Positions 8 to 31,446 of a stretch of 64,000 nt of DNA are shown piece after piece. Every line of letters begins with the position of its first letter. Positions within the stretch are counted from its first letter, which is position 1. The notes under the pieces were generated by a model. It did no database searches and had not been told where the DNA came from. It worked only from the letters and a program-made list of their open reading frames with translations. The stretch lies in IMG/VR virus record IMGVR_UViG_3300010403_000705, positions 248,001-312,000 of that record, one strand, 5' to 3'. Position numbers and translations under genes: made by a program.

Positions 8-202
8 GTGGCTATCATAGTGATGAGCAATCACCAAGCTGATATGTTGCAACTGTATAACAACCATCAGTTGCCGTTGCTTATCGGGGCTTCCATCATT
101 CCCATCATCTCTATTATGATTAGCCGGTGGTGGGGACTATTCTTCTATCTGTTCGCTTCTATAGCAGTCACGGCTCTTGTCATAGCTACTGTCGTGGTCT
201 AA
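8..202 (+). CDS. small membrane protein (probably 5'-truncated by window), paralog of 335..637
   Basis: Hydrophobic ORF sharing the YxNHQxPxL...ISRWWGLxFY motif with the next gene. Confidence 0.7.
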   Translation: MAIIVMSNHQADMLQLYNNHQLPLLIGASIIPIISIMISRWWGLFFYLFASIAVTALVIATVVV

Positions 203-205
203 TGA

Positions 206-228
206 AGAGGGGGACTAGCGCCCCCTCT
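206..228 (+). terminator. GC-rich hairpin after stop codon
   Basis: AGAGGGGG-actagcg-CCCCCTCT. Confidence 0.55.
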
Positions 229-246
229 GTTGTTAGAGTTGTGACT

Positions 247-281
247 TGGTACATCACTTGCAGATTGCATATTCAATGCCA
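247..281. promoter_or_regulatory. 35-bp dyad sigma54-like element, copy 1
   Basis: TGGTAC-N5-TTGCA-gat-TGCA-N7-TGCCA; GG-N10-GC on both strands. Confidence 0.75.
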
Positions 282-334
282 AGTGATGTAGATGATTGTT
301 AGAGACCCATCAAGTAATCAATCTGAAATTAACT

Positions 335-637
335 ATGCTCCTCATCTCGATCCTCTCCTTGGTTCTGTCAATCACCTCGATCTTCGTGGGTGGTGGCAAA
401 GGAATTGCTATGTGGGTGATTGGCACGATTGCCTTAATCATCGCTGGCAACTTTCTGGGGAATGTGATTCAGATGTACAGCAATCATCAGGGACCCATCC
501 TCCTGGCAACTGCGGGGATTCAGGTAGTGGCGATTCTCATCTCGCGGTGGTGGGGTTTGGTTTTTTACTTCGTTGCTTCGGTGGGTCTTACCCTGGTTCT
601 TTTCCTCGGTGCCCTGGCTACCATGACGGTTGGTTGA
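335..637 (+). CDS. membrane protein, paralog of 8..202
   Basis: Several hydrophobic helices; shared motif with the upstream gene; ATG at 335. Confidence 0.75.
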   Translation: MLLISILSLVLSITSIFVGGGKGIAMWVIGTIALIIAGNFLGNVIQMYSNHQGPILLATAGIQVVAILISRWWGLVFYFVASVGLTLVLFLGALATMTVG

Positions 638-671
638 TAGACCCATCTACTTGTTGCTCGGAGAGATAGCA

Positions 672-815
672 ATGCTAACCATCTTTTGGCTGATTGGTCT
701 GCTTTACTGTTGCATTAAGTCCGGTTCGGAAGGAGTAGCTTTTTACCTGCTGGCAACCTTCCTGTTTTTTCTTCTGTTAGGTCGTGTCAATTACAGCTTG
801 CATAGTGGGTTCTAA
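672..815 (+). CDS. small membrane protein
   Basis: GGAGAG upstream of ATG; two hydrophobic segments. Confidence 0.55.
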   Translation: MLTIFWLIGLLYCCIKSGSEGVAFYLLATFLFFLLLGRVNYSLHSGF

Positions 816-836
816 CCAATCTGTTGTATGCTGGTA

Positions 837-869
837 GTCCTGGATCCTCCTAAAATAAGGATCCAGGAC
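837..869 (+). terminator. hairpin terminator-like
   Basis: GTCCTGGATCCT...AGGATCCAGGAC 12-bp stem. Confidence 0.6.
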
Positions 870-890
870 TTACCTGTCATCTATTCTTGT

Positions 891-925
891 TGGCATATCA
901 ATTGCAATATACAGTATCTATACCA
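891..925. promoter_or_regulatory. 35-bp dyad sigma54-like element, copy 2
   Basis: TGGCAT-atcaa-TTGCA-ata-TACA-N7-TACCA. Confidence 0.75.
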
Positions 926-1169
926 AGGTGCAAAAAAGACTACTGCAAACCCATCCATTATTGATCTTGCTCTAAGTTATGAAGAACCTCTTTTGGTACG
1001 GTGTGGTCTTCGTGGGCGGTTTGTTCGTTGGGACGCAGTACATCTCTCCCATCCTGCCGCAGTTGAATCATACTGTGACGGCGATTTCGGATGGCGCCAG
1101 TAGCGTCAAGTCGTCTCTTCCCAAGGTCAAGTAAGTCCTGCGCCGACTCTTACATTACGATAAGCGACA

Positions 1170-1358
1170 ATGAAGACCATCTTTCTGACTTTGACTCTGG
1201 TTGTTGGTGGAATGTATGTGGGCGTCAAGTATGTGGCACCTATTGTGCCGCAAGCTCACATTCCGACGGCGGTAGAGTTCAAGGATGCTTTGCATAAGCT
1301 GCATCAGGAAGTCTCTTGTCCGGTCGGACCCAATCAGAGTAAGTGTCGCAAGATGTAA
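1170..1358 (+). CDS. small membrane-anchored or secreted protein
   Basis: MKT plus hydrophobic N-terminus. Confidence 0.65.
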   Translation: MKTIFLTLTLVVGGMYVGVKYVAPIVPQAHIPTAVEFKDALHKLHQEVSCPVGPNQSKCRKM

Positions 1359-1388
1359 CCCATCACGATCGAAAGGATACTCAATATC

Positions 1389-1589
1389 ATGAATTATTCT
1401 CCGCAGAAGCGTGCTGCCCGTACTCGTGAGCTGAACCGGCTGATTGACGCGCAGCTCAAAGATGACGACGCTCGACCCGCCCGCGTCAAGCGTCTTCGGG
1501 CTCCCATCGACGACACCGATCTGCTGCCTGATCTCTACCGCTCTCCACGCGGTCGGCGTAAGCAGAAGCCGCACCATACCCACGACTGA
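1389..1589 (+). CDS. small basic hypothetical protein
   Basis: AAGGA RBS; followed by hairpin. Confidence 0.65.
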   Translation: MNYSPQKRAARTRELNRLIDAQLKDDDARPARVKRLRAPIDDTDLLPDLYRSPRGRRKQKPHHTHD

Positions 1590-1596
1590 ACCAACT

Positions 1597-1626
1597 ATGC
1601 CTGGCACCTTTTAGGTTGCCAGGCAT
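1597..1626 (+). terminator. hairpin terminator-like
   Basis: ATGCCTGGCA...TGCCAGGCAT. Confidence 0.6.
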
Positions 1627-1646
1627 TATTATTTAAACTAGTTGTT

Positions 1647-1785
1647 TGGCATATGAGTTGCAATTAGCACAAGCTGTACCAAGGGCAAATTTAATAAGCC
1701 TGCACTTATGGCACGGAAGTTGTAATTAGCATAAGCTGTTCCAAGTCTTATGGCACGCTAGTTGCTAACTACAAGTCTTGTACCA
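1647..1785. promoter_or_regulatory. three tandem 35-bp dyad sigma54-like elements (1647-1681, 1709-1743, 1751-1785)
   Basis: TGGCAT-atgag-TTGCA, TGGCAC-ggaag-TTGTA, TGGCAC-gctag-TTGCT, each with an inverted partner half. Confidence 0.8.
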
Positions 1786-1978
1786 AGCTCTGTGATGTCT
1801 TAGAAGACACCCATCAATTACTATGATGTTGCTTAGACACCGGTTGACGCTAAGCAAAGCGCGAAACCGAAGCGGTGGCGAATAGCTGCTGCGCCCCTTA
1901 CGGTGGTTTCTCTCTCCCATCCCGTAAAGGGGTGATCCAATAAGAGAGACAGATTCCAGCAACCAAAAGGAGCGCATC

Positions 1979-3358
1979 ATGAATTCTCGCACCGACCACA
2001 ACTCTCTTCTCGCCGCTCTCGATTCCAGTGCTCTCAACTTCGTGACCGCCGCCTACGGTGCACCGGCGGCTCCCATCAAGCCGACCTTCTCGATCGTCAG
2101 CAACGTCAGCGCTTCGGATCTCCGAACGCCCAAGGCTCCCAAGACGGGCACCAAAGAAGTGATCCACACTGTCAAGCCGTGCAAGCTGCCCTCGCAAGGC
2201 ACCCTCGACGCGGCGAGCTTCCTGGTTGCCACACGGCAGGCTGGCAAGAGACCGGCGACGTACATCCAAGATACCACCGATCTGGAGACGGGCGAGTTTC
2301 ATGCCGCTGGTTCTCCGCGACTGTCGGATAACGGCAGTCCCATTCTGGTTCACGATCCCAAGGTGCAGGTCGCTGATGAAGCCGCCAACATCGCTGCTTT
2401 CTGCGGTTACGATCTCTCGCTGCCCCACGGCACTCAGCTTGATAACGCGGTCAGGATCGCTCGAAGCACGCTGCAATCGCGGCACGATCATCGCGGCAAC
2501 GGGCAATCCTCCAAGCCAGCGGCTGGCGATTGGTCTCGCGATTCTACTCACTTCACCTATGGCGCAAAGCGCCATGCGGTCACGGTAACGCATCACATCG
2601 CGGCACAGCAGATCACCCCGGGTGCCGCCCATCGTTCGCCAGAGGCGCATCAGAATAGGTGGAGCATCGCTGGTTACGTGGCTGGGCGTCCCAATGCCCT
2701 TGCCAAGCTGGTCTCTGACCTGGAGGGGCGTGAGCGTCTGGCGGTGAGCGACAAGATCACGTTCGTCAACCTGCGCGAGCACGTGATGAAGAATGAGCTT
2801 GACGCCTATACCAAGCGTCTCGCCGCCGAGTTTCCTTCGACCGTCGCCTTGCGCGAGACGCTCAATGAGAATGGCGACGTGGTGGGATACGAGAAGGTCG
2901 AGATCAAGAATCCCATCGCCGCGTCTCTGCATGGGCTTCCGTGGAGGAGCGAGAAGCTGATCAACGCTCTTGCCAGTCTTCAAGCTCTGGCGGAAGCCCG
3001 TCTGGAAGCGATTCGCGCCGACAAGACAGGCGTGGATGTGGATGTGGAAACGGCTTACCAAACGGTTGCCCGTATCGCCGAGGAAGAGGCGACCGCTCCC
3101 ATCCGTCAGGGAGAAGAGATCGAGATCGAGAGCATCAATGTCAAGGGCATGCCTGCCAAGATGAGCCGTTATCAGGTGCGCTTGGCGGAAGCTAGCCGGC
3201 TTGCCAATCTCTCGAATCTCGCCGCCGAAGGTGACGCCATCTCTCAGCAAGAGTGCTTCGAGATCGTCTGCTCCCGTACGCGTCAGTCCCTGTCACAGCG
3301 TGGCGCGCCCACGATTGAGGAAGAGCTGACTCTCCTCAACTCTCTTCCCAAGGGATGA
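1979..3358 (+). CDS. hypothetical protein (459 aa), probably highly expressed early protein
   Basis: AAGGAG RBS, strong C/G-ending codon bias, downstream of triple promoter-like element, followed by hairpin. Confidence 0.85.
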   Translation: MNSRTDHNSLLAALDSSALNFVTAAYGAPAAPIKPTFSIVSNVSASDLRTPKAPKTGTKEVIHTVKPCKLPSQGTLDAASFLVATRQAGKRPATYIQDTTDLETGEFHAAGSPRLSDNGSPILVHDPKVQVADEAANIAAFCGYDLSLPHGTQLDNAVRIARSTLQSRHDHRGNGQSSKPAAGDWSRDSTHFTYGAKRHAVTVTHHIAAQQITPGAAHRSPEAHQNRWSIAGYVAGRPNALAKLVSDLEGRERLAVSDKITFVNLREHVMKNELDAYTKRLAAEFPSTVALRETLNENGDVVGYEKVEIKNPIAASLHGLPWRSEKLINALASLQALAEARLEAIRADKTGVDVDVETAYQTVARIAEEEATAPIRQGEEIEIESINVKGMPAKMSRYQVRLAEASRLANLSNLAAEGDAISQQECFEIVCSRTRQSLSQRGAPTIEEELTLLNSLPKG

Positions 3359-3549
3359 GAAACTCTGAGATTTGGGAGAGGGGCTCGGTCCCTCTCCCAT
3401 CTCTTCTTAAGATTCGATGTTATCGAAGATAATTGAAACAGCACAGGTTCCTGCCAAAGACGCGCATGCGTATATCAGAGCCTATGACTGTTGCAATTCT
3501 CTTCAATAGAATTGAGTTTAGGAGAACCATGAAACAGTTTAAGAGAAAC

Positions 3550-3912
3550 ATGAAACAGTTTAAGCTGTATTGGTTGTCTGGTAAGATCGAGGCTGACGCT
3601 TGTCGAAGAGCGGGCGTTGGTGGTTCATCACTTGCCGCACTTGATTACTCCTATAAGGAGTTAAAGGCTGAAGTCAAAGCCTTGACCAACCAAGAGCTTG
3701 CTGATCTCTGTCGGAGCTTCGCAGACATCTGGTCTGATAATATCGAAGATGACAGGCAACCGGTTCTTGCGCAACTCTCTGAGTATGCAAAGACGGATGT
3801 GAGTCTGCACGCCAGGTTGGTTGCTATGATCTCGCTGTATATCTTCGGTCGGTCGCAATCGACTGTGGCGGTAGAAGAATTCCTGGACAATATCTATCAA
3901 CCAGAAGGTTGA
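3550..3912 (+). CDS. hypothetical protein
   Basis: ORF; start region duplicated (ATGAAACAGTTTAAG at 3529 and 3550); AGGAG before the first copy. Confidence 0.6.
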   Translation: MKQFKLYWLSGKIEADACRRAGVGGSSLAALDYSYKELKAEVKALTNQELADLCRSFADIWSDNIEDDRQPVLAQLSEYAKTDVSLHARLVAMISLYIFGRSQSTVAVEEFLDNIYQPEG

Positions 3913-4062
3913 CCCATCCATGCGTCAATGGCTACGTGATCGTTATCGTCGGAGAGACCTGACCATCAAGCTGCGACGTAAGGAGTCAGGTCTTCGTCGG
4001 TTTCGAATCAAAGATGATCGGTATGCAATACCGCGAGAGCGGTGGCAACAGGAGCCCATCTG

Positions 4063-4284
4063 ATGTCAAGTGGTTTTAATTGCTACCTCAGTCAGGTCAA
4101 GTTGACCGTGGATGGCTACGAGCATGGACCGTGTGGCAAACATTGGGGCGTGGGTAAGCCACTGTACAAGATGGATATCAAGATGGCAGACTTCTGGAAG
4201 ACCGCCCATCTGCGCGCGGATGATCGTGAGGATGCCAAAAAGAAAGTGCTAAAGCAGTATCCTAAAGCGCTGTTCTTCATCTGA
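4063..4284 (+). CDS. hypothetical phage protein
   Basis: GGAG RBS; GY..G..WGVGKPLY motif. Confidence 0.65.
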   Translation: MSSGFNCYLSQVKLTVDGYEHGPCGKHWGVGKPLYKMDIKMADFWKTAHLRADDREDAKKKVLKQYPKALFFI

Positions 4285-5715: not shown

Positions 5716-5740
5716 AAAGACAGAAGCTAGTCCAGCGTGC

Positions 5741-5780
5741 AAAGAAGAGAGACGGTGCGTACGCACCGTCTCTCTTCTTT
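5741..5780. terminator. perfect 40-bp palindrome, bidirectional terminator-like
   Basis: AAAGAAGAGAGACGGTGCGT|ACGCACCGTCTCTCTTCTTT followed by T-rich tract. Confidence 0.7.
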
Positions 5781-5793
5781 GTTTTTAATTGGT

Positions 5794-5828
5794 TGGTATG
5801 AAGATTGCAAATTGCAAAGTCTAAGCCA
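5794..5828. promoter_or_regulatory. 35-bp dyad sigma54-like element
   Basis: TGGTAT-gaaga-TTGCA-aat-TGCA-N7-AGCCA. Confidence 0.75.
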
Positions 5829-5887
5829 ATCTATCGGAGACCCATCAACCAAACCTACCTTTGCGTGAAGGAAAGGAATTGATTTTC

Positions 5888-6717: not shown

Positions 6718-6752
6718 TGGCACTGACATTGCAGATTGCATTTAATATACCA
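6718..6752. promoter_or_regulatory. 35-bp dyad sigma54-like element
   Basis: TGGCAC-tgaca-TTGCA-gat-TGCA-N7-TACCA. Confidence 0.8.
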
Positions 6753-6804
6753 ACAGCGATTAACACTGATAAGCACCCATCAGTTAATAAGATCTTCTAC
6801 AACT

Positions 6805-7447: not shown

Positions 7448-7454
7448 ACCACTG

Positions 7455-7484
7455 AGGCGAGGGGAGCATCCCCTCGCCTTTTTT
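7455..7484 (+). terminator. intrinsic terminator
   Basis: AGGCGAGGGGA-gca-TCCCCTCGCCT plus T tract. Confidence 0.75.
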
Positions 7485-7490: not shown

Positions 7491-7525
7491 TGGCGCAGTG
7501 ATTGCTAGTTGCAAAGTAGATGCCA
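7491..7525. promoter_or_regulatory. 35-bp dyad sigma54-like element
   Basis: TGGCGC-agtga-TTGCT-agt-TGCA-N7-TGCCA. Confidence 0.75.
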
Positions 7526-7595
7526 TCAACCATCCAGGTAATAAACTAATAAACCCATCGATTAATAAGAGATCCAATATCTGAGAGGTGCAACG

Positions 7596-9063
7596 ATGTT
7601 TCAGATCACGGGCGAGCATGGTCATGTGGATGGCGATGACGAATTTTATCTGATGCAGTTGCGTGATACCCATCAGCTCCAAGAGCTTCTCCACGGAGCC
7701 TGCGATGATGATGTGGAAAGCAAGTGCCCTTATATCGGTCTTCTGCCGCAAGAGAGCGAGAAAGAAAACGGGTCTCCCATCAATTGGGGCATCAGTTTCC
7801 GGCACGAGACTGATGCCGAGATCGATGAACAGATTCGATATGCAATGCTTTTAGTCTCAGTGTGAGCTGAAGCAGAGCATCAACCCATCAAGCCATAGAA
7901 GAGAAAGTTGGTATGGAAAACATCGGACCTGTTGCATCTTACACCGAAGGGCTGCGAGCCATCAAGTTCCTCGCCAGGCTGTCGAGGTTGCCAATCATCT
8001 TCTTTGGGTTGGATCCCAGTCCTCACAGCAATCAGCTTTGGCTGACCTATAATAAACGTCGCCACGAAGAGCTGTTTCGAGAGGGCTCGGTTGGCATGGG
8101 GATGGGTTCTCATGAATTGGCTGGCGCCTTGGATGCCTGGCGATGTCTTAATCGCACCCATCAGCGACGCAAAATCTCTAACCCAAGAGCTGTAAAGCCT
8201 CGGACTTTTAATGACGTGAAGTTATCGTTCCAATATGATGAGGAAAAAACATGAGTTCATCTCCCATCAGCAGCGAGGTCCCGACCTCGCGAGAGTTGAC
8301 CTATCAGCAAGTACAGCAGCAGTTTCCGGAAGCTTGGGAAGAGCTTCCCAAATCTTATCAAGCAGATAGCTGTCTGACCTTTTACTTGCAGGACCATGAG
8401 TTGTCGGCGGACCATGACCTGCACGCGGAAACGTATGTGTGGCTTCCCACCCAGTCTTTCTGGACTCTCGTTAACAGACGGCATCGATAATCACAACTTC
8501 ACAGTCTCTTATTCCTGAGGAAGGCTCAATACAAGGATGTGACATCTATGGAGCCCATCGTCATTGAAGTGTCTGAGGAACCTGGACTAACGGGGCTTCA
8601 AGAGATTGTACGACGTATCAAGAGTCTCATCAATCCGGATCCTTGGGCGGAGTCAGCACCCATCATTCTGCGTGGTACGGCAAAAACTCTGGCGCTGGTT
8701 AAACTGCTGCGACTGAATCAAGTACAGGGGATTCAGATGGAGGTGATATCTTCTGCCTCACCTCCAGATCCCATCATGAATACCTAAGTAGACATCATGA
8801 AAAAACTAGTCAGACTGACTATCATCTATCTGCATCACAAGTCATCTGCTGTGGTAACGGCGGATGTGCAAACCAAGGATGGTTGGGATACTCTGACAGT
8901 ACCAGACCATATCATGAATGACATGGCAACTGAGTTGGGTTGCCCATCTGGAACTTACTTCACCTATATTATTAGCGAGGATCTTTGCGCCTCGTTTGAT
9001 GATTCTGGTGTCTTCAGATCATGTCATGATTCTGATCAGAGCTGTTGGCGCAAGTGCCTCTGA
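7596..9063 (+). other. cluster of five small hypothetical CDS (7596-7865, 7913-8254, 8251-8490, 8539-8787, 8797-9063)
   Basis: Tightly packed co-directional ORFs with RBS-like purine tracts. Confidence 0.6.
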
Positions 9064-9132
9064 GGCGTGGTAGAAAACCATAACCCATCCGCAAACTTCA
9101 GACATTATGTAGTTGGTGTGAGGTCAATCAAG

Positions 9133-11301
9133 ATGAAGAATCAGCCGCTGCCGATCGATGCCTTCTTGCCTGTTATTCTCGAAAGCGTTTCTTCTAATCC
9201 AGTCACGATCATTGTTGCCGAAACTGGCGCTGGGAAAAGCACGCGGGTTCCGCGTGCCTTGCTGGAAGCTGGCAAAAAAGTAGTGGTCACCCAACCGCGT
9301 CGTCTGGCTGCCGAATTGGTGGCTGAAAGAGTGGCGGCAGAGCACGGGTCTCCCATCGGTTCTTCTGTGGGATACAGGTTGGGCGGCGGGGTGCGAGTTG
9401 ATAACTCCAAGACTCGATGTTTGTTCATCACAGAGGGTCTGGCTCTGGTGCGTGAGCTGATGTCTTCTCAGGACTCCCATCACTCCTATGATGTGCTGGT
9501 GCTCGACGAAGTGCACGAATGGCACGAAGACATGGAGATTCTGGTTGCCTGGTGCCGGCGCGCTCTGGCAAGCAATGCGAAGTTTCGGTTGGTGCTGATG
9601 AGTGCCACCCTGGAAGCGCACAAGCTTTCTGAATACTTCGACGGAGCACCCATCATCAATGTTCCTGGTCGTATTTTTCCCGTGACGGTACAGGAACCCG
9701 AGGCGATGATTGAGGGCGATCAGAACCTGTGGAATCCCATCGTGCGCGACGTGACGCGATTGGTACAGCAAGGACGCAATGTCTTGGTCTTCGTTCCCGG
9801 CAAGCCCGAGATCTCTCAAGTCTGTGAAATGCTCAAGTTTACTGGGGCGAACGTTTTCCCTCTGCACGGCGAATTGGATAAAACAGAACGGCAGAAGTGT
9901 TTTGCCAGCTACTCCCATCCCAAGGTGATCGTCTCGACCAACGTATCACAGACTAGCATCACCATCGATGATATTGATGCAGTGGTGGATTCCGGTCTGG
10001 AGCGACGGGTGGAAGTGGTCAATGGTGTAGAGGGTCTGCGGCTGCGGTTGATCTCCAAAGCAGATTCTGCCCAGCGCCGCGGGCGCGCCGGTCGTTGTCG
10101 GGCAGGTATCTATATCGATCACAGCGATAACGCTTTTCGCACCATGCCCGGCGTGGGTTTTCGAGAAGAGTTTCCCATCCCCGAGATCTCTCGCGTCTTG
10201 CTTGACCGTGCGGTTCTTCGTCTGGCAATGGCGGATCTGGATCTGGAAGCTCTGGATCTGTTTCATGGTGTTTCTACATCTGAGGTGCATCTTGCCAAGG
10301 AAGTGCTTCGTGCGCTGGGTTGCCTGGGTGAGGGAATCCAGGTCACAGAGATTGGGCGACGCGTCTATCAGCTTCCCATCGGCGTTCGCTCTGCGCGGAT
10401 GCTGATAGAGGCTGAGAAGCGAGGATGCCTGAGTGAGGTGATGACCATTGCCGCCATCATCGAAAGCGGCGGAATCGTTGACAATAAAAACATCAACGAA
10501 GCAACTGGCATTCCCATCTGGCGCAATTTGGGCAGTGATAGCACCAGCGATCATCTGACCATGCTGAGAATCTTTCAGCATGCCACGGCAGGAAAGACCC
10601 CGTGGCGACAGCTTGGTTTGCACGGCAAAGGAATGTCGCAAGCCATAGAGACGCGCAAGGCATTGGAGTCCGCCAGCAAGAGAATCCTTGCCAGCGATTC
10701 CCATCGCAAAGGTACAACGGAAGATATCATTAAGAGCGTTTTGAGCGGCTTGGTTGATCAATTCCGAGCACGAACCACCAATCGTTGGGGAGAGTACACC
10801 TACGGCACTGACTGCCGGAAGCTCGGACAGACCTCCAGCGTTGTTGCCAGCGCCCATCAGTTTGTGGTAGGCATGCCTTTTGATATCTCTACCAAGAAGG
10901 GTGGGATCTTGGGTCTGCTGCAATTCGCTTCTGGAGTGAAGGTAGAGTGGGTGTTGGAGCTTGCTCCACATCTCTTCAAGGTACAGCGCGAAGCGCCGAA
11001 GTACGATCCGAATCTGGATCAGGTTGCTCGCACTACTACTGTTAAGTTCAGGGATCGCGTGGTGGCTAGCTTTGCCGATCCTTGCAATGAAGGAGATACT
11101 CTGGCGCAATATCTCTCGGAAGTTGTCAGTTTCAGCGATGCCTATGGCTATGGTTTTTATAGTTTGCCCGAGGCGTACCGCCGTGCTCTTCGAACTTTGC
11201 AGGGTCGTCCACGTCAGGTAGTACACACCCATCTCCGAAGTGTTTTGAGTGGGGTAGGTCGCCTGGCGAATGTAACGCCTTCTAGTTTGATGATGCAATG
11301 A
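9133..11301 (+). CDS. DEAH-box (HrpA/HrpB-like) RNA helicase
   Basis: LPI start, AETGAGKST, TQPRRLAA, DEVH, MSAT, PLHG, STNVSQTSITIDD, QRRGRAGR, HA2-like region. Confidence 0.92.
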   Translation: MKNQPLPIDAFLPVILESVSSNPVTIIVAETGAGKSTRVPRALLEAGKKVVVTQPRRLAAELVAERVAAEHGSPIGSSVGYRLGGGVRVDNSKTRCLFITEGLALVRELMSSQDSHHSYDVLVLDEVHEWHEDMEILVAWCRRALASNAKFRLVLMSATLEAHKLSEYFDGAPIINVPGRIFPVTVQEPEAMIEGDQNLWNPIVRDVTRLVQQGRNVLVFVPGKPEISQVCEMLKFTGANVFPLHGELDKTERQKCFASYSHPKVIVSTNVSQTSITIDDIDAVVDSGLERRVEVVNGVEGLRLRLISKADSAQRRGRAGRCRAGIYIDHSDNAFRTMPGVGFREEFPIPEISRVLLDRAVLRLAMADLDLEALDLFHGVSTSEVHLAKEVLRALGCLGEGIQVTEIGRRVYQLPIGVRSARMLIEAEKRGCLSEVMTIAAIIESGGIVDNKNINEATGIPIWRNLGSDSTSDHLTMLRIFQHATAGKTPWRQLGLHGKGMSQAIETRKALESASKRILASDSHRKGTTEDIIKSVLSGLVDQFRARTTNRWGEYTYGTDCRKLGQTSSVVASAHQFVVGMPFDISTKKGGILGLLQFASGVKVEWVLELAPHLFKVQREAPKYDPNLDQVARTTTVKFRDRVVASFADPCNEGDTLAQYLSEVVSFSDAYGYGFYSLPEAYRRALRTLQGRPRQVVHTHLRSVLSGVGRLANVTPSSLMMQ

Positions 11302-13892: not shown

Positions 13893-13927
13893 TGGTACAA
13901 CTTTTGCATTATGCACAATGAATGCCA
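13893..13927. promoter_or_regulatory. 35-bp dyad sigma54-like element
   Basis: TGGTAC-aactt-TTGCA-tta-TGCA-N7-TGCCA after hairpin 13846-13878. Confidence 0.8.
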
Positions 13928-14002
13928 ACATAAAAGTTTATAGGGTTTGCACTTCCCATCAGCTTTTGTTTGGTGATATTGATCGAGGAGTGCCAGAGAA
14001 TT

Positions 14003-14364: not shown

Positions 14365-14610
14365 ATGAATGTAGGTTTGTCCTACCGCGGCGCCGTCATC
14401 CTGGATATGCTTAAAGCGAAAAACGGCAAGGTGCTTTCCCATCGTGCCATTGGACGGCGGCTTTGGAAAACCGATGCTCCTGCATCGTGGACTACCATGA
14501 TTGCAATTGAGATTGGCAAGCTGCGACGGATTGATTCCAATCTGCGTCGTCAGATTGTCAATGTACATGGCAAGGGTTACATGTTTGGATGCACTGTGCT
14601 CCACAAGTAA
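14365..14610 (+). CDS. stand-alone OmpR/PhoB-type winged-helix DNA-binding protein
   Basis: IL.ML....GKVLS...I...LW...I.KLRR...I.NVHGKGY pattern of the Trans_reg_C domain. Confidence 0.75.
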   Translation: MNVGLSYRGAVILDMLKAKNGKVLSHRAIGRRLWKTDAPASWTTMIAIEIGKLRRIDSNLRRQIVNVHGKGYMFGCTVLHK

Positions 14611-16669: not shown

Positions 16670-19249
16670 ATGACGCGCGAAGCACCCAAAGGTTTTGAGA
16701 TCATTGTGGCTCCTGTCTGTGGCAGTGAGGAGAATGGCTGGAGAATCTGCGGAAACGATAAATTGCGTCAGGTTGTTCTTGATCCCATCAGCGCGGAGGC
16801 TCTGGCACTCTCAGAGCGTGGTTCTGGGTTGGTGGTCATTTTGCGCCCGCAGTTCAATGAGCCTCATCTGGGCAAATATGCTTTCCGGGAGTATCGCAGT
16901 TTTGATGGTGGTCTGTTTGAGGAGATTCATTTTACCCTCGGCGCCAACACTTCCAAGCAGAAGCGATTGGACAATGAGATCGTTCTTCCTTCGCCGCCCA
17001 TCTCTTAACACCTCTCATGGTGTGTAATGGTCTTGAAAGGTCATCATGCATTGTTACGATCCTTACAACGTATCACATGTGATTGCTTACTTTGGTTACG
17101 AACAAGTTTTTTGCCGCGTTGGCAATTACGATGATGCTGAAGTTCATGGGAACAAGATAGACCGTACCTTCACCCAAGGTCTTGAGAATCATCTTGCCCA
17201 TCGAGTAGGGATACACCCCGAAAACAAGCAGGGCTTTTTGTGGGTTGATAACAGTAAAAAAATCCATTACGGGATGTTCTATGATTGTGACTTTGTGCAC
17301 ATCGAATGGCACACCCATCGTGTATTCAAAGAGTCGGTGCCTAACAACTTCTCCCGCGGCAAATTCATGGTACAAGCCGCTTATCTAGAATATCTGCGGT
17401 TTCCCAATCATGGATCCACCATTCGAGTCACGCAGTACGTTGATGGTCCTAGAGACTTTATTAGGACTTCCAACAGATTCCATAATGAAACGCCCATCGG
17501 TGCTGTTCGTTTTGTAGTAGGTGTTGACAATTCTTTTTGGAAGCTGACTAACTGCGGCGACCAAGGTCTCACAACTACACGAATTAACATTCAGACACAA
17601 GGATACTAAGATGACTGAGAGAGTGAAGCTGTGGCGTCGACGAGATTTGATGTCAAGTAAACGCTTGGCGTCGTCATTGCTGACCGGATTGATGAGCAAT
17701 ACATCTGAGGCATGGAAGAATCCCATCAAGCTGGTTGAGATGTGCTATGCTATCTCTGATGAGTTCGTTCGTCAGTCCAACCGTCGTGGAGAAGGAACGG
17801 GGAAAAAGCGTCGCAAACGCTGATTAAACCTGGCGTTATCATTGTTCCCATCTTTAATGGAGAGTTTCATGGCTAAGGATCTGTTTATCGCAGCGGTATT
17901 TCTCTTGTGGGGCGGCGTCTATTTTGCAACGCCAAAGACGTATTATAATCCTCTCGTGGGATATTATACCGGACGATACACCAATGCCGCGTGGCTATGT
18001 TTCTTTGCGTCACTGGTGTGTGTCTGTGTGGGTCTAAGTGTGCTTCACTAATTCCCATCTCTAACATGTGGGAAGATAAAACATGAGCAAAGATTTTCCC
18101 ATTCCGGTGGTGGTGCTTCGCAAAGAGTTTTCACAGATACGCGGGCGCTCACATGCGGCAACCCGTCAGGAATTTCTGCAAGCTTGTCAAGCATATCTTA
18201 AAGAATACAAGCTACCTGAGACTCCTGACAATTGGGTACATGCTGCGAAGACGTGTCGTATTCACTGTCGTCGATGTGATGGCACGGGAATGTTTATTAC
18301 TGGCATGAGCAATGGTCAGCCCATCGGACCTGGTGGACCTTGTTATCGATGTAACGGCAAGGGTTGGCAGAATGATGCGGATGCTCGGCGCAACTTTGGT
18401 GCTGATATGCATCAAAAAGTAATTCTCTAACAGACCATCGGAAAAAGGAGATGTCATGTTCCTTGAGGAAAATCACGAGTATCTCCAAGTAAGTCGAGCG
18501 CTGAGCGAATTGGTAGCTGCCCTGACCCATCTGGACATTGCTATCCTGTGTAGTGACGCCACTTTGACAGATGCTCGCGCAGCAGTCGTCAAAGGAAAAC
18601 GGCAGCTTGAATTGCGAAAGGCAGAGATTCTGGCAAACCATTATCAATTGTTGGAGAAACATGGTATGCTGTGACAGATAGCATTGTCCTGAAGCCCACT
18701 GCTAAAGAAGAGCATCAGGCAAAAAGGCGATCTAAAAAAGAACGTAAGGGAAAATCTTAACGTTTCCCATCCACCGCACACTAAATAAGGCTCATATGAT
18801 CAATCAGATTGTTGAACAGTTTCTCATTGCTGCTTGTATCGCTACCATTGAGGCATCGGATCGTCTGACTGAGGAGTTTAACAACGCTATGAAAAACAGC
18901 ATCGCCAGCAATGGCTGGGGGATGTTTTCTCCTCCGGATATGGGCAAGATGCATGCCATGGCGGCGCTGGACTATAATGAAAAGCGATGGGTGCCGATGC
19001 TGAGCCTCATCGAATGCTAGCCCATCAGAAGGATTCTATACTATGAATATGAAGTGCGCTCCTGATAATCCCAATGCTGTCTTTTTTGTTATCGATGGAT
19101 TGCGTTGCATAGGCTCCAACCATCGTTGTCGGATGCCCATCATTGAGGATGATGCAATCTGGTGCGGAAGTACCACGGCTCCAGATATGGATAGCTTGTA
19201 CTATACAGATTTTGATGACGAAGAGGATGATCCTGTGGACCACACCTAG
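16670..19249 (+). other. cluster of small hypothetical CDS (16670-17008, 17046-17609, 17611-17823, 17869-18051, 18456-18674, 18796-19020, 19043-19249)
   Basis: Co-directional packed ORFs with RBS; terminator hairpin at 19279-19312. Confidence 0.6.
18083..18430 (+). CDS. protein with DnaJ-type zinc-finger repeats
   Basis: CRRCDGTG and CYRCNGKG (CxxCxGxG). Confidence 0.7.
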   Translation: MSKDFPIPVVVLRKEFSQIRGRSHAATRQEFLQACQAYLKEYKLPETPDNWVHAAKTCRIHCRRCDGTGMFITGMSNGQPIGPGGPCYRCNGKGWQNDADARRNFGADMHQKVIL

Positions 19250-19329: not shown

Positions 19330-19364
19330 TGGTATAGTATTTGCAATATACATTAACCATGCCA
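19330..19364. promoter_or_regulatory. 35-bp dyad sigma54-like element
   Basis: TGGTAT-agtat-TTGCA-ata-TACA-N7-TGCCA after terminator 19279-19312. Confidence 0.75.
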
Positions 19365-19698
19365 ATTCTATCTCCCATCGTTTTTCCTACATCAGTAAGG
19401 TAAGACCTAACAAGACATTTAAGAGGGTCAAGAAAAATGAGATTCAGGGAGATTGGTAATTTGGGGGTTGCTGTCTTGATTGCCGAAGATGTCCCATCGC
19501 TCAAGATGGATCAGACAGCTTGGCTTTATGCCATAGGCTGTGTGTCAGCTATCTTCAGTGGTATTACCATGCTTTCCACCATTGTTTTTTAACCCATCAT
19601 CGATAAGTTTAAACAACTGTTATGAATACAAGTATCAACATCCTTCATGTTTCGATGATTTTGGTGGGCTTGTTGTCTCTGTTGGTTCCCATCCTGTC

Positions 19699-21789: not shown

Positions 21790-21863
21790 GTCCTCTTAGC
21801 TCAGTCGGATAGAGCAATGGGTTTCTAACCCATCGGTCGGGAGTTCGAATCTCTCAGGGGACG
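21790..21863 (+). tRNA. tRNA-Arg(TCT)
   Basis: GTCCTCT/AGGGGAC acceptor, GCTC..GAGC D-arm, ATGGG-TTTCTAA-CCCAT anticodon arm, TTCGAAT T-loop. Confidence 0.92.
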
Positions 21864-21909
21864 CCGCAAGACGATGTATCCCATCAATTTATTGATTAGG
21901 TGTTATACC

Positions 21910-23469: not shown

Positions 23470-23534
23470 GGAATTTCTGTTACGTCTTTGAGGAGCGTGG
23501 GATTACCCCACGCTCCTCAAAGTTATTGTTTAAT

Positions 23535-23569
23535 TGGCACTAGCATTGCAATATGCGAAGAGTATGCCA
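23535..23569. promoter_or_regulatory. 35-bp dyad sigma54-like element
   Basis: TGGCAC-tagca-TTGCA-ata-TGCG-N7-TGCCA after a 16-bp hairpin. Confidence 0.8.
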
Positions 23570-24036
23570 GTTATTTTCCCATCATCATAATGATCTCTGA
23601 TAACTTACTATATGGCGCTATCAAAAGCGTTCCTCACTAAGCGTTGCCTATCTTTGCGCTGGTGAATGTTATAAGGTCGGAACAATCCATCATGTTTTCT
23701 ATCTGTGGAGCCGATTGCACATCGGACGGTCGAATCGCGGGTCTAGAACCACGACTAAGAGCTGAAAAAGGCGAAAGCGGCGGTCAGCCAACCCATCCGT
23801 TGGAGGCATTGAAGCAGAGGAGAATGATTGGTGGTTTATTTCGTTAAATGTCGAATCTAGTTGGCAGAGGATATGCGGATGCACTTTAATTCGAGCTAGG
23901 CACATGCTCAATTGAAGTGGGAGGGGTTCGATTCCCATCCTGAAATATCATCGGTGCAAAGAGTATGCTTAACTAGGTGCCATTCAACATTTAACGAAAC
24001 AAGCTACCCATCAAAAACTAGACGTAATGAATAACC

Positions 24037-26337: not shown

Positions 26338-26876
26338 TAGGGACTGATGCAAGATGTCCGGGGCTTCTTTCAGAAGCCCCGGACATCTTTGCTTTCCCAT
26401 CAGACAATCAGAAAGACTATTCACATGAAGTATTTTGTTCTTATATTAACTGGAGGTTTGTTCTTTCTTGCATGTTCCTTAGTGTGGCATTACTGTTCTG
26501 AATGGTGGCACGCCTTGCTTGCGTGCGTGTTTCTGTTTTTCTTTTCATTCTTCTCTATACTAAGTGGTATGGTTATACAGGATGATTGACCCATCACTTA
26601 TTCTTTTGGCTATCTTTAAGAGAGGAGTAGATTATGACAAATGAATGGGGAATGGTTCCAGTCTTCAATCGACACAATATGCAAATTGGCGAGTCTCTGT
26701 ACGAAGGAGATATCATCATGGTTCCGCGCGATAACAGTTATCGCGTTTTCAAATATGAGATTACTGGATCTTATGTAGAGACTTCGCATCAAATCATCGG
26801 TCTTGATTTGAAGGACGATTAAGATAGATTCTCACGAATGGGCGCGTATGCGCCCATGATATTTATATTTATTGAT

Positions 26877-26911
26877 TGGCATCATCATTGCATTTTGCAT
26901 ATGCTATACCA
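26877..26911. promoter_or_regulatory. 35-bp dyad sigma54-like element
   Basis: TGGCAT-catca-TTGCA-ttt-TGCA-N7-TACCA after hairpin 26838-26857. Confidence 0.8.
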
Positions 26912-27145
26912 AATCTGTGATGAATCAACCCATCACACAATGAGTTGATAATAGATCAGGAGATTTGAGTCATGAGAAAATTTTTATGTTGGCTTGGTTT
27001 CCATGACTGGATCTGGAATGCTTCGATTTTTGTTCCTAACAAGGGAATGTATCACCTTGCCGAATGTTCTGGTTGTAAGAAAAACAACACAGTCAGAAAA
27101 TCTAGAATGGTGTTGAAGTAACCCATCTTCGAAAAACGTAGATTT

Positions 27146-28970: not shown

Positions 28971-29005
28971 TAACCCATCTCTGCAAAGAAGGAATCACAT
29001 ACGTT

Positions 29006-29242
29006 ATGCTCTTCAAGATTACTCCGGTTGTTTGTGCCCTGACTTTTCTCATTGTTCTGTCCGGTTGCGGCACCCGTGAGGTGCAGCCTCAGTTCCCTTC
29101 GCCCGATCCTCGGACGGTGGATCGGCTTGAGACGGACGCAGTGGAAGCCAACAAGAAGCTGGCGAATGCTTATTGGGATAGCAGCAAGGCATGGGCAGAG
29201 ATGCAGTATCTTCGTGCCAAGGCGTCTTACTGTCAGCCTTAA
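29006..29242 (+). CDS. putative lipoprotein
   Basis: Signal peptide with lipobox LSGC. Confidence 0.7.
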   Translation: MLFKITPVVCALTFLIVLSGCGTREVQPQFPSPDPRTVDRLETDAVEANKKLANAYWDSSKAWAEMQYLRAKASYCQP

Positions 29243-29475
29243 CCCATCCCGAACTTTTACAACCCCAGAAGAGGCTTCAGATGAAGCTCTGCTGAAAAGC
29301 AAAAGGTTATAGATAATATACACCTCTTCTGTAATTCTTAGGTTCGGTGTTCCGTAAGCGTGTGCGTGAGTCGGTAGGACGCATAAGTTTCCCTGTTAAA
29401 AACACCTCTTTCTTATCTCTCATTGTACTCCGAGTTTTTATAAACCACCAATAATTCTGAAGGAGACTACACACC

Positions 29476-30192
29476 ATGGCGAAAGATCCCAAGAGGAGCG
29501 ACGATACCAGCACCGGCGTCAAGAGCATCAGTCGCTCGGCAATGAATGCCGCCAAGAGAGCAGCAGCCAAGGCGAAACAGAATCCCATCCTTCGAGGAGG
29601 AGTCTGCTCGTCCTGCGGACAGAAGTCCACGTCATGCAGCACCAATACCGCACACATGGGATGCCTGGGTTACTTCGCCGGTCCGTCAATGACAACCAAC
29701 AAAACCTTTGATGATCCTCTTTTTGATGCTCTGGCGCAGCATGATTCGCTAAGCTATGATGGCACCATTCTCCGACAGCCCATCGAGGGGACCTGGATCA
29801 ACGAGAGTGTTCTTCAGCAGCGTCGCGCTGAACGTCGGCAGGAAGCTCTTCTGCGCGCCAGTAAGCGAGTGATCCTGACCTCTGTTTTTGAGAAGTGTCA
29901 AGGCGAGGATGAGAACGGCGCCTATGAGTTTGACAAGTGTGTGCGCGTCAACGTGACTAATGGTCTGGGCGAAGCGGTGTCGTGGCTGGATGGCGCATGG
30001 CGCACCGAAGTTGAGCAGCAGGAATATGCCGCTCAGAAAGAAGCCAAGCTGCGTGCCAGCATTATTGAGGTGGCTTCTCCAGAAGAAGATCAACTTTTGT
30101 CGGGTCTCAGTGATCTCCCGGAATGTCCGGATGATTCTTACGAGAAGCTCCTTCTGCAACCTCAGGTTGATATCATTATCGCTGCGTGCTAG
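29476..30192 (+). CDS. hypothetical protein (CxxC)
   Basis: AAGGAG RBS, 238 aa. Confidence 0.8.
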   Translation: MAKDPKRSDDTSTGVKSISRSAMNAAKRAAAKAKQNPILRGGVCSSCGQKSTSCSTNTAHMGCLGYFAGPSMTTNKTFDDPLFDALAQHDSLSYDGTILRQPIEGTWINESVLQQRRAERRQEALLRASKRVILTSVFEKCQGEDENGAYEFDKCVRVNVTNGLGEAVSWLDGAWRTEVEQQEYAAQKEAKLRASIIEVASPEEDQLLSGLSDLPECPDDSYEKLLLQPQVDIIIAAC

Positions 30193-30319
30193 CATTATGA
30201 AGGTTGATTTATTTATCAACCCTGAAAACGTTAACTAAAGAAATCAACTGATCATTATCTGGTTGTTGATGGGGATCTAAAATAAAGATCCCCATCAACA
30301 CACACACGGACGCAAAGAT

Positions 30320-30538
30320 ATGAATTTCGATCAAATGTCAATTCGTATTGCTGCTAAGATTGAGAATCCTGCGCATTGGATGTTGGAGCTTCGTCGTATC
30401 GCTACTGAGCTTCGTCTTGATGTGCGTCGGTGTCTTCCTTTGGCGCCTGAATCTTTGCAAATCGCTTGCCGGGCGCTGCTTGATGAGGCAGGCAAACAGA
30501 GACGTACGCCTGCGGAAATCCTTCGCGCTGTTGATTAA
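30320..30538 (+). CDS. hypothetical protein
   Basis: ORF ending at terminator 30546-30574. Confidence 0.65.
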   Translation: MNFDQMSIRIAAKIENPAHWMLELRRIATELRLDVRRCLPLAPESLQIACRALLDEAGKQRRTPAEILRAVD

Positions 30539-30594
30539 AGGAATCATGGGGCGGCTTCTCAGAAGCCGCCCCATTTTTATTTCTTGTTTAAGAA

Positions 30595-30629
30595 CGGCAC
30601 AGATTTTGCATAGTGCATAATACATGCCG
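30595..30629. promoter_or_regulatory. 35-bp dyad sigma54-like element
   Basis: CGGCAC-agatt-TTGCA-tag-TGCA-N7-TGCCG. Confidence 0.75.
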
Positions 30630-30999
30630 CATTTTTCCCATCCAGAATCAAACATAACTAAAAGTATGGATAACACTACAGTTCATATTATCAATTGGTC
30701 TATCATGCGCTTTGTGGGACCAGGATATGATCCCATTGTATTGCATGGTGATTTTTGCGGACATCCGAGTCTTGATCGTGGCACGCCTAGTTCTTTTTTA
30801 TCATTCGATAAGAAAAATTTGCTTGGCAAAAGTATAAGCGGAAAAGTCTATATTTTGGAAGCTTGTTCTTTTCGTCCGACTGGGTTTGCGCGCACGCTGG
30901 AAGATGCGTGTGATTGGATCGAGCAGAATTGGGTGAGAAAAAAATAAAATAATTTACCGCCCATCTATCAGATTTATTTTTCTAATATGAAGGATACTT

Positions 31000-31446
31000 A
31001 TGATTACTCTGGCAAGATTTGATGTTTCTGAAATCCTCCCTCTAATAGGAGCAGGACAGGAGCCCATCATGCTCAAAGGTCATAGGGTTAAAGTTGGATC
31101 CACTAGATTAGAGTGTCTCAAAAGAAATCAGAAATGTGTTTCTTGTCATCGGGTTGGTACTGTCTTTCTTTTGCAGAGTCACCGTGGAGAAACACCACAT
31201 CTAAATCTTTTCCATGTGATGGCAGATAAAGAGCCAGAAAACTGGAACTTAGTTGCATGGAAATCAATGTGGAAAAATTTGATGACTCAAGATCATATCA
31301 TTCCTAAATGGTCTGGAGGATCTGATAGTATTGATAATTTACAGACTATGTGTTCGTCGTGTAACCATAAAAAAGGTGGTAGCACTCCAGAAGATCCTAG
31401 TCGGGATCCAAATTGCGCGACGCGAAAAAAGAAAAAAAGAAAGTAA
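31000..31446 (+). CDS. HNH endonuclease
   Basis: CVSC ... TQDHIIPKWSGGSDSIDNLQTMCSSCNHKKG. Confidence 0.88.
   Translation: MITLARFDVSEILPLIGAGQEPIMLKGHRVKVGSTRLECLKRNQKCVSCHRVGTVFLLQSHRGETPHLNLFHVMADKEPENWNLVAWKSMWKNLMTQDHIIPKWSGGSDSIDNLQTMCSSCNHKKGGSTPEDPSRDPNCATRKKKKRK

Follow-up and report, generated by a model that had tools for sequence, protein, structure and literature searches.

The analyzed window is a 64,000-nt stretch of DNA, corresponding to positions 248,001 to 312,000 of IMG/VR record IMGVR_UViG_3300010403_000705. The window is internal to a ~447.6-kb phage genome, recovered as two mutually permuted assemblies. Its left part belongs to a GC-rich island (GC content 0.45-0.53) of small early-type genes, and its right part has a GC content of 0.36-0.41. 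The island has a sharp left edge, a junction with phage DNA of 0.26-0.34 GC, located about 630 nt before the window (position ~880 of sequence L001). All genes in the window are located on one strand. These include a gene for an HrpA-like DEAH helicase (9067-11301, +) and a gene for tRNA-Arg(TCT) (21790-21865, +). Genes for RNA repair, namely RNA ligases, a polynucleotide-kinase-like ATPase, and the HrpA-like helicase, were found in the same region.

Distribution of the CCCATC Hexamer

The hexamer CCCATC was found 183 times on the + strand of the window, whereas its reverse complement, GATGGG, was found on this strand only 3 times. In total, 150 copies are located in positions 1-31,100 (4.8 per kb) and 33 copies in positions 31,101-64,000 (1.0 per kb). 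The zero-order expectations for these two parts are 5.5 and 2.5 copies, respectively, and Markov models of orders 0-2 give 5.5-12.4 copies for the island. The dense part of this lattice (1-31068, +) has a mean gap of 208 nt and contains all three reverse copies; the first copy lies before the window, at position 916 of L001. The sparser part (31069-64000, +) contains no reverse copies and continues beyond the window to at least 101.6 kb, with 21 more copies on the + strand, none in reverse, and a density of 0.6-1 per kb.

To exclude codon usage as the source of this enrichment, synonymous codons were shuffled, keeping every protein sequence and the codon pool of the region, which makes the control conservative. 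In the coding sequences of the island 98 copies were observed versus 17.5±3.9 expected (maximum 31 in 200 shuffles), and in those of the right-hand part 22 versus 3.7±2.1. Thus, the enrichment did not vanish under the control that had been named beforehand as able to refute it. Among 60 Pro-Ile dipeptides, 47 (78%) are written as CCCATC, against about 15% expected from codon usage, and these dipeptides are themselves about 3-fold over-used. The hexamer was found in all three reading frames (47, 33, and 17 copies) and at 53 intergenic sites (35% of copies). Intergenic density is twice the coding density, and many copies lie between a stop codon and the next ribosome-binding site. However, no fixed position relative to start codons or tRNA ends was found. 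Gaps between copies are under-dispersed (CV 0.61 versus 0.99±0.08, minimum gap 51, Fano factor 0.48), with no periodicity or helical phasing.

The reverse orientation is depleted. In the AT-rich block from 31 to 92 kb, GATGGG was found 0 times versus 10.5-16 expected at any Markov order. CCCATC is by far the most asymmetric hexamer, with a ratio of 51:0 against 22:2 for the next best. Of the three reverse copies in the island, the one at 8101-8106 lies inside an ORF, the one at 18986 is predicted to pair with the forward copy at 19021 in a hairpin (18986-19026), and the one at 30268 forms a perfect hairpin with the forward copy at 30291 (30268-30296).

The lattice was first noticed in a sequence-only reading, and its observation holds: the approximate counts, the three reverse positions, and the copies directly after stop codons, directly before ATGs, in the anticodon stem of the tRNA, and after promoter-like loci were all confirmed. 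Three details required correction. The helicase gene contains 12 copies, not 11; density falls as a step at about 31 kb to a plateau that persists for at least 70 kb, not as a smooth decay; and the window does not start at a genome end.

Palindromes with sigma54-Like Half-Sites

In addition to the hexamer, 35-bp palindromes were found in the window. Each half of these palindromes matches the sigma54 -24/-12 consensus in sequence and spacing (TGGCAC-N5-TTGCW), and the palindromes follow terminators. At the left end of the window, a terminator-like hairpin (209-226) is followed by a palindrome (247-281) and by CCCATC at 306. Similar composite units include a palindrome with CCCATC at 950 (891-955) and three tandem palindromes (1647, 1709, and 1751) after a terminator hairpin, where one CCCATC at 1810 follows the last palindrome (1647-1815). 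A terminator with a 20-bp stem (5739-5782) precedes the palindrome at 5794-5828, followed by CCCATC at 5841. A palindrome with CCCATC at 6776 (6718-6781) is followed by a unit containing a terminator (7454-7480), a palindrome (7491-7525), and CCCATC at 7554. Two further palindromes are followed by CCCATC at 13955 (13893-13960) and, with a weaker right half of the palindrome, at 19374 (19330-19379). The remaining units in the island consist of a terminator with a 16-bp stem (23486-23522), a palindrome (23535-23569), and CCCATC at 23578; a terminator (26838-26857), a palindrome (26877-26911), and CCCATC at 26929; and a terminator (30546-30574), a palindrome (30595-30629), and CCCATC at 30637. 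The composite unit also occurs outside the island, with a hairpin (39104-39133), a palindrome (39190-39224), and CCCATC at 39232. All of these units are on the + strand.

In 12 of 12 palindrome loci in the window, the next CCCATC lies 7-28 nt after the palindrome end, and at a 13th locus, at 87.6 kb, it lies at 41 nt. Random placement gives 1.6 of 11 loci, and 0 of 20,000 permutations reach 11. Eight or more palindromes lie 10-20 nt after strong terminator hairpins and upstream of genes, which is the layout of a transcription-unit start. The lattice itself starts just downstream of a promoter-like site at the island edge, next to a boundary element conserved in a relative. A scan of genome contigs for the composite element gave chance-level single hits only.

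Conservation in Related Phages

The same hexamer with the same polarity was found in at least six related huge-phage lineages, whose island proteins are only ~30% identical and whose islands range in GC content from 0.42 to 0.65. Even spacing (CV 0.54-0.68) was found in five of the six lineages tested; the sixth gave a CV of 0.92. The composite of palindrome and hexamer is conserved in the sequences L121, L122, and L133 and in further huge-phage contigs, always in one orientation per contig. Of the 12 copies in the helicase gene, ten are at the same codon positions in the relative with 86% identity and three in the relative with 57% identity. About 70% of aligned sites are conserved against 18% for background hexamers, and losses are matched by nearby gains. 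A more distant relative, L135, lacks the lattice. It has non-palindromic sigma54-like promoters (TGGCAC-N5-TTGCTAATAG) followed by a 15-nt polar leader motif that contains CCATC.

Over the 102 kb examined from the window start, the lattice is co-oriented with every gene (204 forward and 3 reverse copies), and no switch of polarity was seen in the 122 kb examined. Minus-strand genes located 10-20 kb upstream carry no sense-oriented copies (0 in 6.5 kb); the tag is therefore not universal to the mRNAs of this phage. No block of minus-strand genes carrying the lattice was found, so co-orientation with transcription cannot be separated from a fixed DNA polarity.

Possible Role of the Lattice

The analysis demonstrates that CCCATC is a motif acting at the level of nucleic acid, under purifying selection for its presence, polarity, and even coverage. 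It likewise establishes that in the window each unit of terminator, palindrome, and gene opens with a copy 7-28 nt after the palindrome, that further copies follow every 100-300 nt regardless of reading frame, and that the reverse orientation is selected against. The rest is inference. The promoter role of the palindromes is inferred from sequence and position only, as are the reading of the hexamer and its function. On this basis, CCCATC is tentatively interpreted as a sense-strand signal tied to rightward transcription of early and middle transcription units, a reading that is preferred to its rivals but held with less than even confidence. It is supported by the coding-independent enrichment, the copy after each palindrome, the layout of the terminator-palindrome units and their conservation, the co-orientation with genes, the depletion of the reverse complement, the even spacing, the compensated turnover of sites, and the polar leader motif after the sigma54-like promoters of L135. 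The hexamer would be read as transcription proceeds, either on the nascent RNA (CCCAUC) or on the exposed non-template strand of the transcription bubble, by a factor that must be re-engaged every few hundred nucleotides to keep sense transcripts productive through sustained elongation, protection from factor-dependent termination, or protection from decay. Because the promoter element is symmetric, the one-sided tag would also give transcription its direction, antisense RNA carrying no tag.

Some results argue against this view, including the absence of sense-oriented copies from the upstream minus-strand genes. In predicted RNA folds the motif is no more accessible than control hexamers of the same composition and is less accessible than with shuffled flanks, which argues against a simple single-stranded RNA-binding site. 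Strong intrinsic terminators end most units, so classical terminator read-through antitermination is unlikely. No candidate reader was found among about 60 ORFs scanned, where the only DNA-binding hit is a stand-alone OmpR-type winged helix and no NGN/KOW protein was found.

The interpretation offered by the sequence-only reading is partly supported. Its core inference, a polar signal of nucleic acid and not a protein motif, holds, based on the codon shuffle, the use of all frames and intergenic DNA, and conservation in relatives with diverged proteins. Of its three proposals, an RNA tag of early transcripts fits best, given the position of the first copy after each promoter-like palindrome that follows a terminator. 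The premise behind the other two, a Chi-like signal and loading sites for a protein acting on first-injected DNA, was a left genome end with density decaying away from it, and this premise is not supported by the internal position of the island in the two permuted assemblies, the junction at its left edge, or the step in density.

A Chi-like attenuator is the main rival and is not excluded, although it is considered unlikely. In this model, GATGGG on the minus strand would be recognized by RecBCD or AddAB of the host (or of a phage), and a dense array would protect, or make recombinogenic, DNA that the helicase-nuclease enters from the left. There is direct precedent, since the E. coli phage LLS, the P. 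aeruginosa phage MD8, and P1 carry abundant Chi sites that are oriented (20:3 in LLS and 32:0 in MD8) and clustered at a terminus (PMC12315714). The motif is short, asymmetric, independent of frame, and over-represented beyond codon usage, its complement is G-rich, the left edge of the dense domain is sharp, the geometry is correct for an enzyme moving rightward on the 3'-ended minus strand, given the established polarity of RecBCD, and the absence of the lattice from L135 fits a host-specific signal. On the other hand, no known terminus lies at the island edge, density is 10-20 times higher than in any known Chi-rich phage (1 per 115-300 bp against 1 per 1.9 kb), and the model predicts neither the copy after every promoter-like palindrome nor active removal of the reverse orientation. 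Still less likely is a tag for RNA processing or decay, as with T4 RegB, marking early mRNAs for cleavage by a phage or host endoribonuclease and thereby timing the shut-off of early genes or separating cistrons. The highest density in the block of early-type genes and lower density in later blocks, the intergenic excess, the nearby RNA-repair genes, and the polarity, automatic for an RNA signal, agree with such a tag, but the motif is mostly base-paired in predicted folds, has no fixed position relative to start codons or tRNA ends, and the tag would not explain the even coverage inside long ORFs or the removal of the reverse complement.

Orienting or loading sites, as with KOPS and SRS, for a double-stranded DNA translocase reeling in or moving the genome in one direction, for example during entry of a very long genome, are doubtful. 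Strict polarity, removal of the reverse orientation, a sharp start point of a long one-directional domain, and even spacing suited to repeated reloading are consistent with them, but no translocase gene was seen in the 122 kb examined, no known genome end lies at the island edge, and coupling to the terminator-palindrome units is not predicted. About equally doubtful is a consequence of restriction or modification, with sites kept in one orientation to escape a Type III or Type ISP enzyme that needs head-to-head sites, or serving as a strand-specific methylation mark. A 6-bp asymmetric word with its reverse orientation removed fits, and T7 carries 36 EcoP15I sites, all in one orientation (PMC3874151); however, evasion predicts orientation bias, not 14-29-fold enrichment, even spacing, or site conservation, three reverse copies persist in the island, and coupling to the palindromes is not predicted. 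Finally, a by-product of codon, dipeptide, or base-composition bias could look polar where all genes are on one strand, and high-order Markov models absorb much of the excess (order 4, 114 expected) because the motif inflates its own sub-words. This explanation is refuted by the roughly 5.6-fold excess over the codon shuffle, by the asymmetry of the hexamer, and by its retention across divergent islands; the intergenic copies also argue against it.

Comparison with Known Systems

No such signal has been described. Like Chi in the phages mentioned above, CCCATC is a short asymmetric oligomer that is the most over-represented word in the phage, oriented almost entirely one way, concentrated in one part of the genome, independent of codon usage, and subject to turnover during evolution; here, spacing is under-dispersed, the reverse orientation is depleted, and copies are positioned after promoter-like palindromes. 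T7, whose genes are also all on one strand, shows only mild enrichment of EcoP15I sites, with no even spacing and no conserved positions, while the enrichment described here is selectively maintained. The KOPS motifs of FtsK and SRS motifs of SpoIIIE share strict polarity and selection against the reverse orientation, but are G-rich 8-mers spaced about 10 kb apart, are chromosome-wide, and flip at dif, whereas CCCATC is a 6-mer found at 0.6-9 per kb and tied to transcription-unit starts. Leader-proximal elongation signals, such as ops/RfaH, lambda nut, HK022 put, and NusG-dependent TTNTTT pauses, are likewise strand-specific short elements located shortly after the promoter and read on the non-template strand or the nascent RNA, and CCCATC has this leader position if the palindromes are promoters, as inferred. 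However, ops, nut, and put occur once or twice per operon, the others are not selected for even spacing, the consensus differs (that of ops is 12 nt), no NGN/KOW protein that could be the NusG paralogue expected with ops was found among the about 60 ORFs scanned, and intrinsic terminators still end the units here. The GGAG sites of T4 RegB are a class-specific short word in early mRNAs but sit in Shine-Dalgarno regions only. The first-step-transfer pre-early region of T5 is a distinct one-directional block of small early genes making up about 7-8% of the genome, but it is terminal and has no such lattice. The U1 snRNP/polyadenylation-signal axis, which gives direction to mammalian bidirectional promoters, also relies on a short sense-enriched, antisense-depleted word repeated along the transcript downstream of a symmetric promoter; it is a eukaryotic mechanism with no known prokaryotic or phage counterpart, and the likeness is by logic only.

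A more speculative and unlikely, though not excluded, possibility is that the hexamer acts as a "sense licence". Symmetric sigma54-type palindromic promoters would fire, or could fire, both ways, and only RNA polymerase travelling over CCCATC every 100-300 nt, on the non-template strand or nascent RNA, would stay productive. Promoter direction and transcript survival would then be encoded along the whole transcription unit, not at the promoter, as a prokaryotic-virus counterpart of U1/polyadenylation-signal "telescripting" with a reader of unknown type.

Hundreds of copies of one 6-mer are held in place by selection across a clade of the largest known phages, with genomes of roughly 450 kb, and this constraint is strong enough to reshape protein sequences. 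If the hexamer is a transcription-coupled tag, it would be a new way of specifying transcript identity or direction in a prokaryotic virus and would also point to an unknown reader protein. If it is Chi-like, it would define the recognition sequence of an uncharacterized host helicase-nuclease and show an extreme form of Chi accumulation. In either case, the lattice, together with the GC-rich island and the palindromic sigma54-like elements, gives a sequence signature for finding the early region of these uncultivated phages.

Enrichment of the CCCATC Hexamer

The observation made in the sequence-only reading, namely a dense one-directional array of CCCATC hexamers, was confirmed. CCCATC was found 183 times on the + strand, while its reverse complement GATGGG was found only 3 times, at exactly the reported positions 8101, 18986, and 30268. 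Of the 183 copies, 150 are located in positions 1-31,100 and 33 in the rest of the window, as compared to zero-order expectations of 5.5 and 2.5, respectively. Because all long open reading frames (ORFs), which were called crudely, and all five tRNA genes are on the + strand, codon bias had to be excluded. To this end, synonymous codons were shuffled with preservation of every protein sequence and of the codon pool of the region, which already contains the codons of the motif itself. In the coding sequences of the GC-rich island, 98 copies were observed versus 17.5±3.9 in the shuffled sequences, and in the coding sequences to the right of it 22 copies were observed versus 3.7±2.1. Of 60 Pro-Ile dipeptides, 47 are written CCCATC, against about 15% expected, and the dipeptide itself is about three times more frequent than predicted from the amino-acid frequencies. 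The copies use all three reading frames (47/33/17), and 53 of them are intergenic. The core of the motif is exactly six bases with weak flanks: C is avoided at -1, G is rare at -2, and A is favored at +6. These flanks are the same in three lineages. No paper linking CCCATC or GATGGG to a phage signal was found in the literature.

Spacing and Orientation of the Copies

The gaps between copies in the island are under-dispersed, with a CV of 0.61 against 0.99±0.08 for random placement, a minimum gap of 51, a fitted gamma shape of 3.4, and a Fano factor of 0.48. Neither periodicity nor helical phasing was detected. This is even coverage and not a crystal-like lattice. GATGGG is depleted on the + strand: in the AT-rich block at 31-92 kb it was found 0 times versus 10.5-16 expected under Markov models of orders 0-4. 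Two of the three surviving reverse copies pair with an adjacent forward copy in predicted hairpins. The RNA accessibility of the motif, analyzed in predicted folds, is not elevated. A link of the motif to tRNA 3' ends was inconsistent, and only tRNAs were found in an Rfam search. Two of the tRNA genes in the window are unusually long, tRNA-Ile(TAT) (42541-42633, 93 nt) and tRNA-Tyr(GTA) (54196-54284, 89 nt); the latter is missed by the Rfam tRNA model at the gathering threshold.

Genomic Context of the GC-Rich Island

The window comprises bases 248,001-312,000 of IMGVR_UViG_3300010403_000705. The parent JGI contig (Ga0134123_10000001) is 447,633 bp, and an independent ENA assembly of the same phage (k141_5300428) is 447,666 bp. 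These two assemblies are permuted relative to each other by about 152 kb, so the contig ends carry no information about the genome ends. About 122 kb (27%) of this genome were analyzed. A megablast search against cultured phages gave no match, tblastn searches with two helicases gave only distant hits, and a metagenome scan with an alignment of an island protein of no known family returned only the source contig.

The dense part of the array is a GC-rich island (0.45-0.53) of about 32 kb, roughly 7% of the 447.6-kb genome. Its left edge is sharp and lies about 630 nt before the window, where DNA of 0.26-0.34 GC changes to about 0.5 GC, and the first CCCATC follows within 40 nt. This junction lies in L001:1-1100 (window -1511 to -410; L001 is the sequence covering the island edge). 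A tract of about 175 nt just before the island (L001:706-880; window -806 to -632) is purine-rich and contains almost no C on the + strand, and a match to a sigma70-like promoter was found at L001:815-860. The island is opened by paralogous small hydrophobic (membrane-type) proteins (L001:1432-1713 and window 292-669), which are conserved at the island start in a distant relative (L133:14897-15250). At the right edge of the island, a gene for an HNH endonuclease is located (31000-31446).

The 20 kb upstream of the island contain genes on both strands and only 3 copies of the hexamer, all in + orientation; the minus-strand genes there have no sense-oriented copies. One of the upstream genes, 3.7 kb before the island (L127:6854-7939, in an upstream sequence), encodes a peptide chain release factor 2 (RF2). 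The closest homologues of this protein are located on many contigs of 327-491 kb, which indicates a large clade of huge phages, and its presence could bear on stop-codon usage in the phage or its host. The RF2 homologues and their cluster names gave no organism names that could point to a host. Downstream of the island, all genes stay on the + strand, and the array continues at 1.0 copies per kb (31-64 kb) and 0.56 per kb (64-101.6 kb). In total, 204 forward and 3 reverse copies were found over 101.6 kb. The drop at about 31 kb is a step that coincides with the fall in GC and not a gradient, and the enrichment ratio falls only from about 29-fold to about 10-14-fold. The interpretation offered by the sequence-only reading was partly supported: the inference of a signal at the nucleic-acid level holds, but the premise of a left genome end with density decaying away from it is not supported.

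Recent horizontal transfer of the island or a chimeric assembly was rejected, since the junction is identical in independent assemblies, the layout of island plus array recurs next to the RF2 gene in relatives, and the AT-rich DNA also carries the polar motif. The possibility that the hexamer is a primase site was also rejected, because its density varies 8-fold along one block and there are no flipped copies on the other side of the point where gene orientation diverges.

Conservation in Related Phages

The island encodes an HrpA-like DEAH helicase (9067-11301). Homologues of this helicase led to the contig L121 (86% identity, syntenic), with 37 forward and 0 reverse copies in 8.1 kb, and to L122/L123 (57% identity, 11 shared genes), with 56:1 and 41:1 copies. 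More distant helicase relatives (L124-L126) show no polar hexamer at all. Cellular homologues with 45-49% identity carry names from Patescibacteria MAGs, and one more distant phage relative (L124) has a Ro60/TROVE gene next to the helicase. Together with RNA ligases and polynucleotide-kinase-like ATPases, this gives the region an RNA-repair flavor.

RF2 led to L132/L133 (71% identity; contigs of 349 and 452 kb), which show the same layout, including AT-rich DNA, a sharp switch to 0.52-0.65 GC, a conserved boundary element, and CCCATC at 152:5 in 20.6 kb, or one per 135 bp. The junction in this relative lies in L133:14140-14480, and the conserved boundary element is TTTGGGrGGCAA..CGTGCC..GACCCATC, with a small GGCA/TGCC hairpin. 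An island protein shared with the window is only 32% identical, so the array there cannot simply be inherited site by site. A scan for the composite of palindrome and hexamer (see Promoter-Like Palindromes) revealed further array-bearing contigs of 446.5, 447.8, 91, and 48.6 kb and others, with island GC of 0.42-0.65 and density of 3-9 copies per kb. The array is present here and in the lineages of L121, L122, L133, L146, L147, and L153. Under-dispersed spacing was found in five of the six related lineages tested (CV 0.54-0.68), while the sixth, L146, gave 0.92. In the alignment of the window with L121, DNA identity is 70% and background hexamer identity is 18%, whereas about 70% of aligned motif sites are conserved and losses are matched by nearby gains.

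A partial triple-motif scan of IMG/VR gave mostly chance singletons. A scan of the genome collection for the composite element gave only single hits at chance level. An 8-kb stretch at 0.38 GC in a contig binned as Candidatus Nanoarchaeia (L232, DATDZG010000037.1) contains 13 GATGGG and 0 CCCATC. This is probably a fragment of a related huge phage mis-binned into a DPANN MAG, so it gives no host information.

Promoter-Like Palindromes

The promoter-like loci are 35-bp palindromes located at 247, 891, 1647/1709/1751, 5794, 6718, 7491, 13893, 19330, 23535, 26877, 30595, and 39190. Each half matches the sigma54 -24/-12 consensus (TGGCAY-N5-TTGCW), an assignment based on sequence only, with a central TTGCA-N3-TGCAA that could form a small hairpin. 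A symmetric sigma54-type promoter would itself be unusual for a phage. At least eight of the palindromes lie 10-20 nt after strong intrinsic-terminator hairpins and upstream of genes. In 12 of 12 loci in the window, the next CCCATC starts 7-28 nt after the palindrome, and a thirteenth locus, at 87.6 kb, has it at 41 nt. Random placement predicts 1.6 of 11, and none of 20,000 permutations reached 11. The palindrome is symmetric, but the hexamer lies on one side only. This composite is conserved in L121, L122, and L133, and it has a single orientation in every contig found.

A more distant relative (L134/L135; RF2 67% identical) has a GC-rich island but lacks the array. Its CCCATC count is 9:1, and most of these copies lie inside another element. 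In this relative, non-palindromic TGGCAC-N5-TTGCTAATAG sites are followed, mostly 37-127 nt downstream (one at 279 nt), by a 15-nt polar motif, yCCATCGATCGACAAg. This motif occurs 22:0 in L135:9650-20642 (IMGVR_UViG_3300035180_002574), about once per 450 bp; it is mostly intergenic, usually lies just upstream of start codons, is sometimes found in tandem arrays 58-130 nt apart, and contains the 8-bp palindrome TCGATCGA.

Search for a Reader Protein

Pfam and PHROGs searches with about 60 ORFs revealed no candidate reader of the hexamer except a stand-alone 81-aa OmpR/PhoB-type winged-helix DNA-binding domain (14365-14610; Pfam Trans_reg_C, E = 2.7e-07). This is the only recognizable nucleic-acid-binding fold among the small island ORFs. 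Additionally, three tandem paralogues of the phiEco32-type COOH-NH2 ligase, followed by a GGACT-domain gene, were found (61174-62739 and L128:11716-15654, L128 being a further sequence from this analysis).

Possible Function of the Hexamer

Several alternative functions can be considered. A Chi-like role has real precedent: phage LLS has 20:3 oriented sites clustered at a terminus, MD8 has 32:0, and P1 has 50 sites (PMC12315714). Nonetheless, this role needs a DNA end that the assemblies do not show, and it explains neither the coupling to the promoter-like palindromes, nor the 10-20-fold higher density, nor the removal of the reverse word; it is considered possible but unlikely. Restriction-evasion bias of the kind described for T7 and EcoP15I (PMC3874151) explains polarity but not enrichment. 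A translocase-orienting role and a RegB-like decay tag remain possible, while a compositional artefact is excluded.

The analysis demonstrates that the signal acts at the nucleic-acid level, that it is selected for presence, polarity, and even coverage, that it is anchored to the start of terminator-bounded units, and that it is conserved across a clade. That the palindromes are promoters and that the hexamer is read during transcription is inferred, with no transcript data behind it. This reading is preferred only tentatively, being somewhat less likely than not. In the part of the genome analyzed, no minus-strand block with the array was found that could separate transcription from a fixed DNA polarity, and the upstream minus-strand genes lack the tag. 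Predicted RNA accessibility also speaks against this reading, and because intrinsic terminators still end the units, classical antitermination is unlikely. On the other hand, only reading of the hexamer during transcription predicts three features together: the leader-proximal copy, the co-orientation with all genes, and the depletion of the antisense word.
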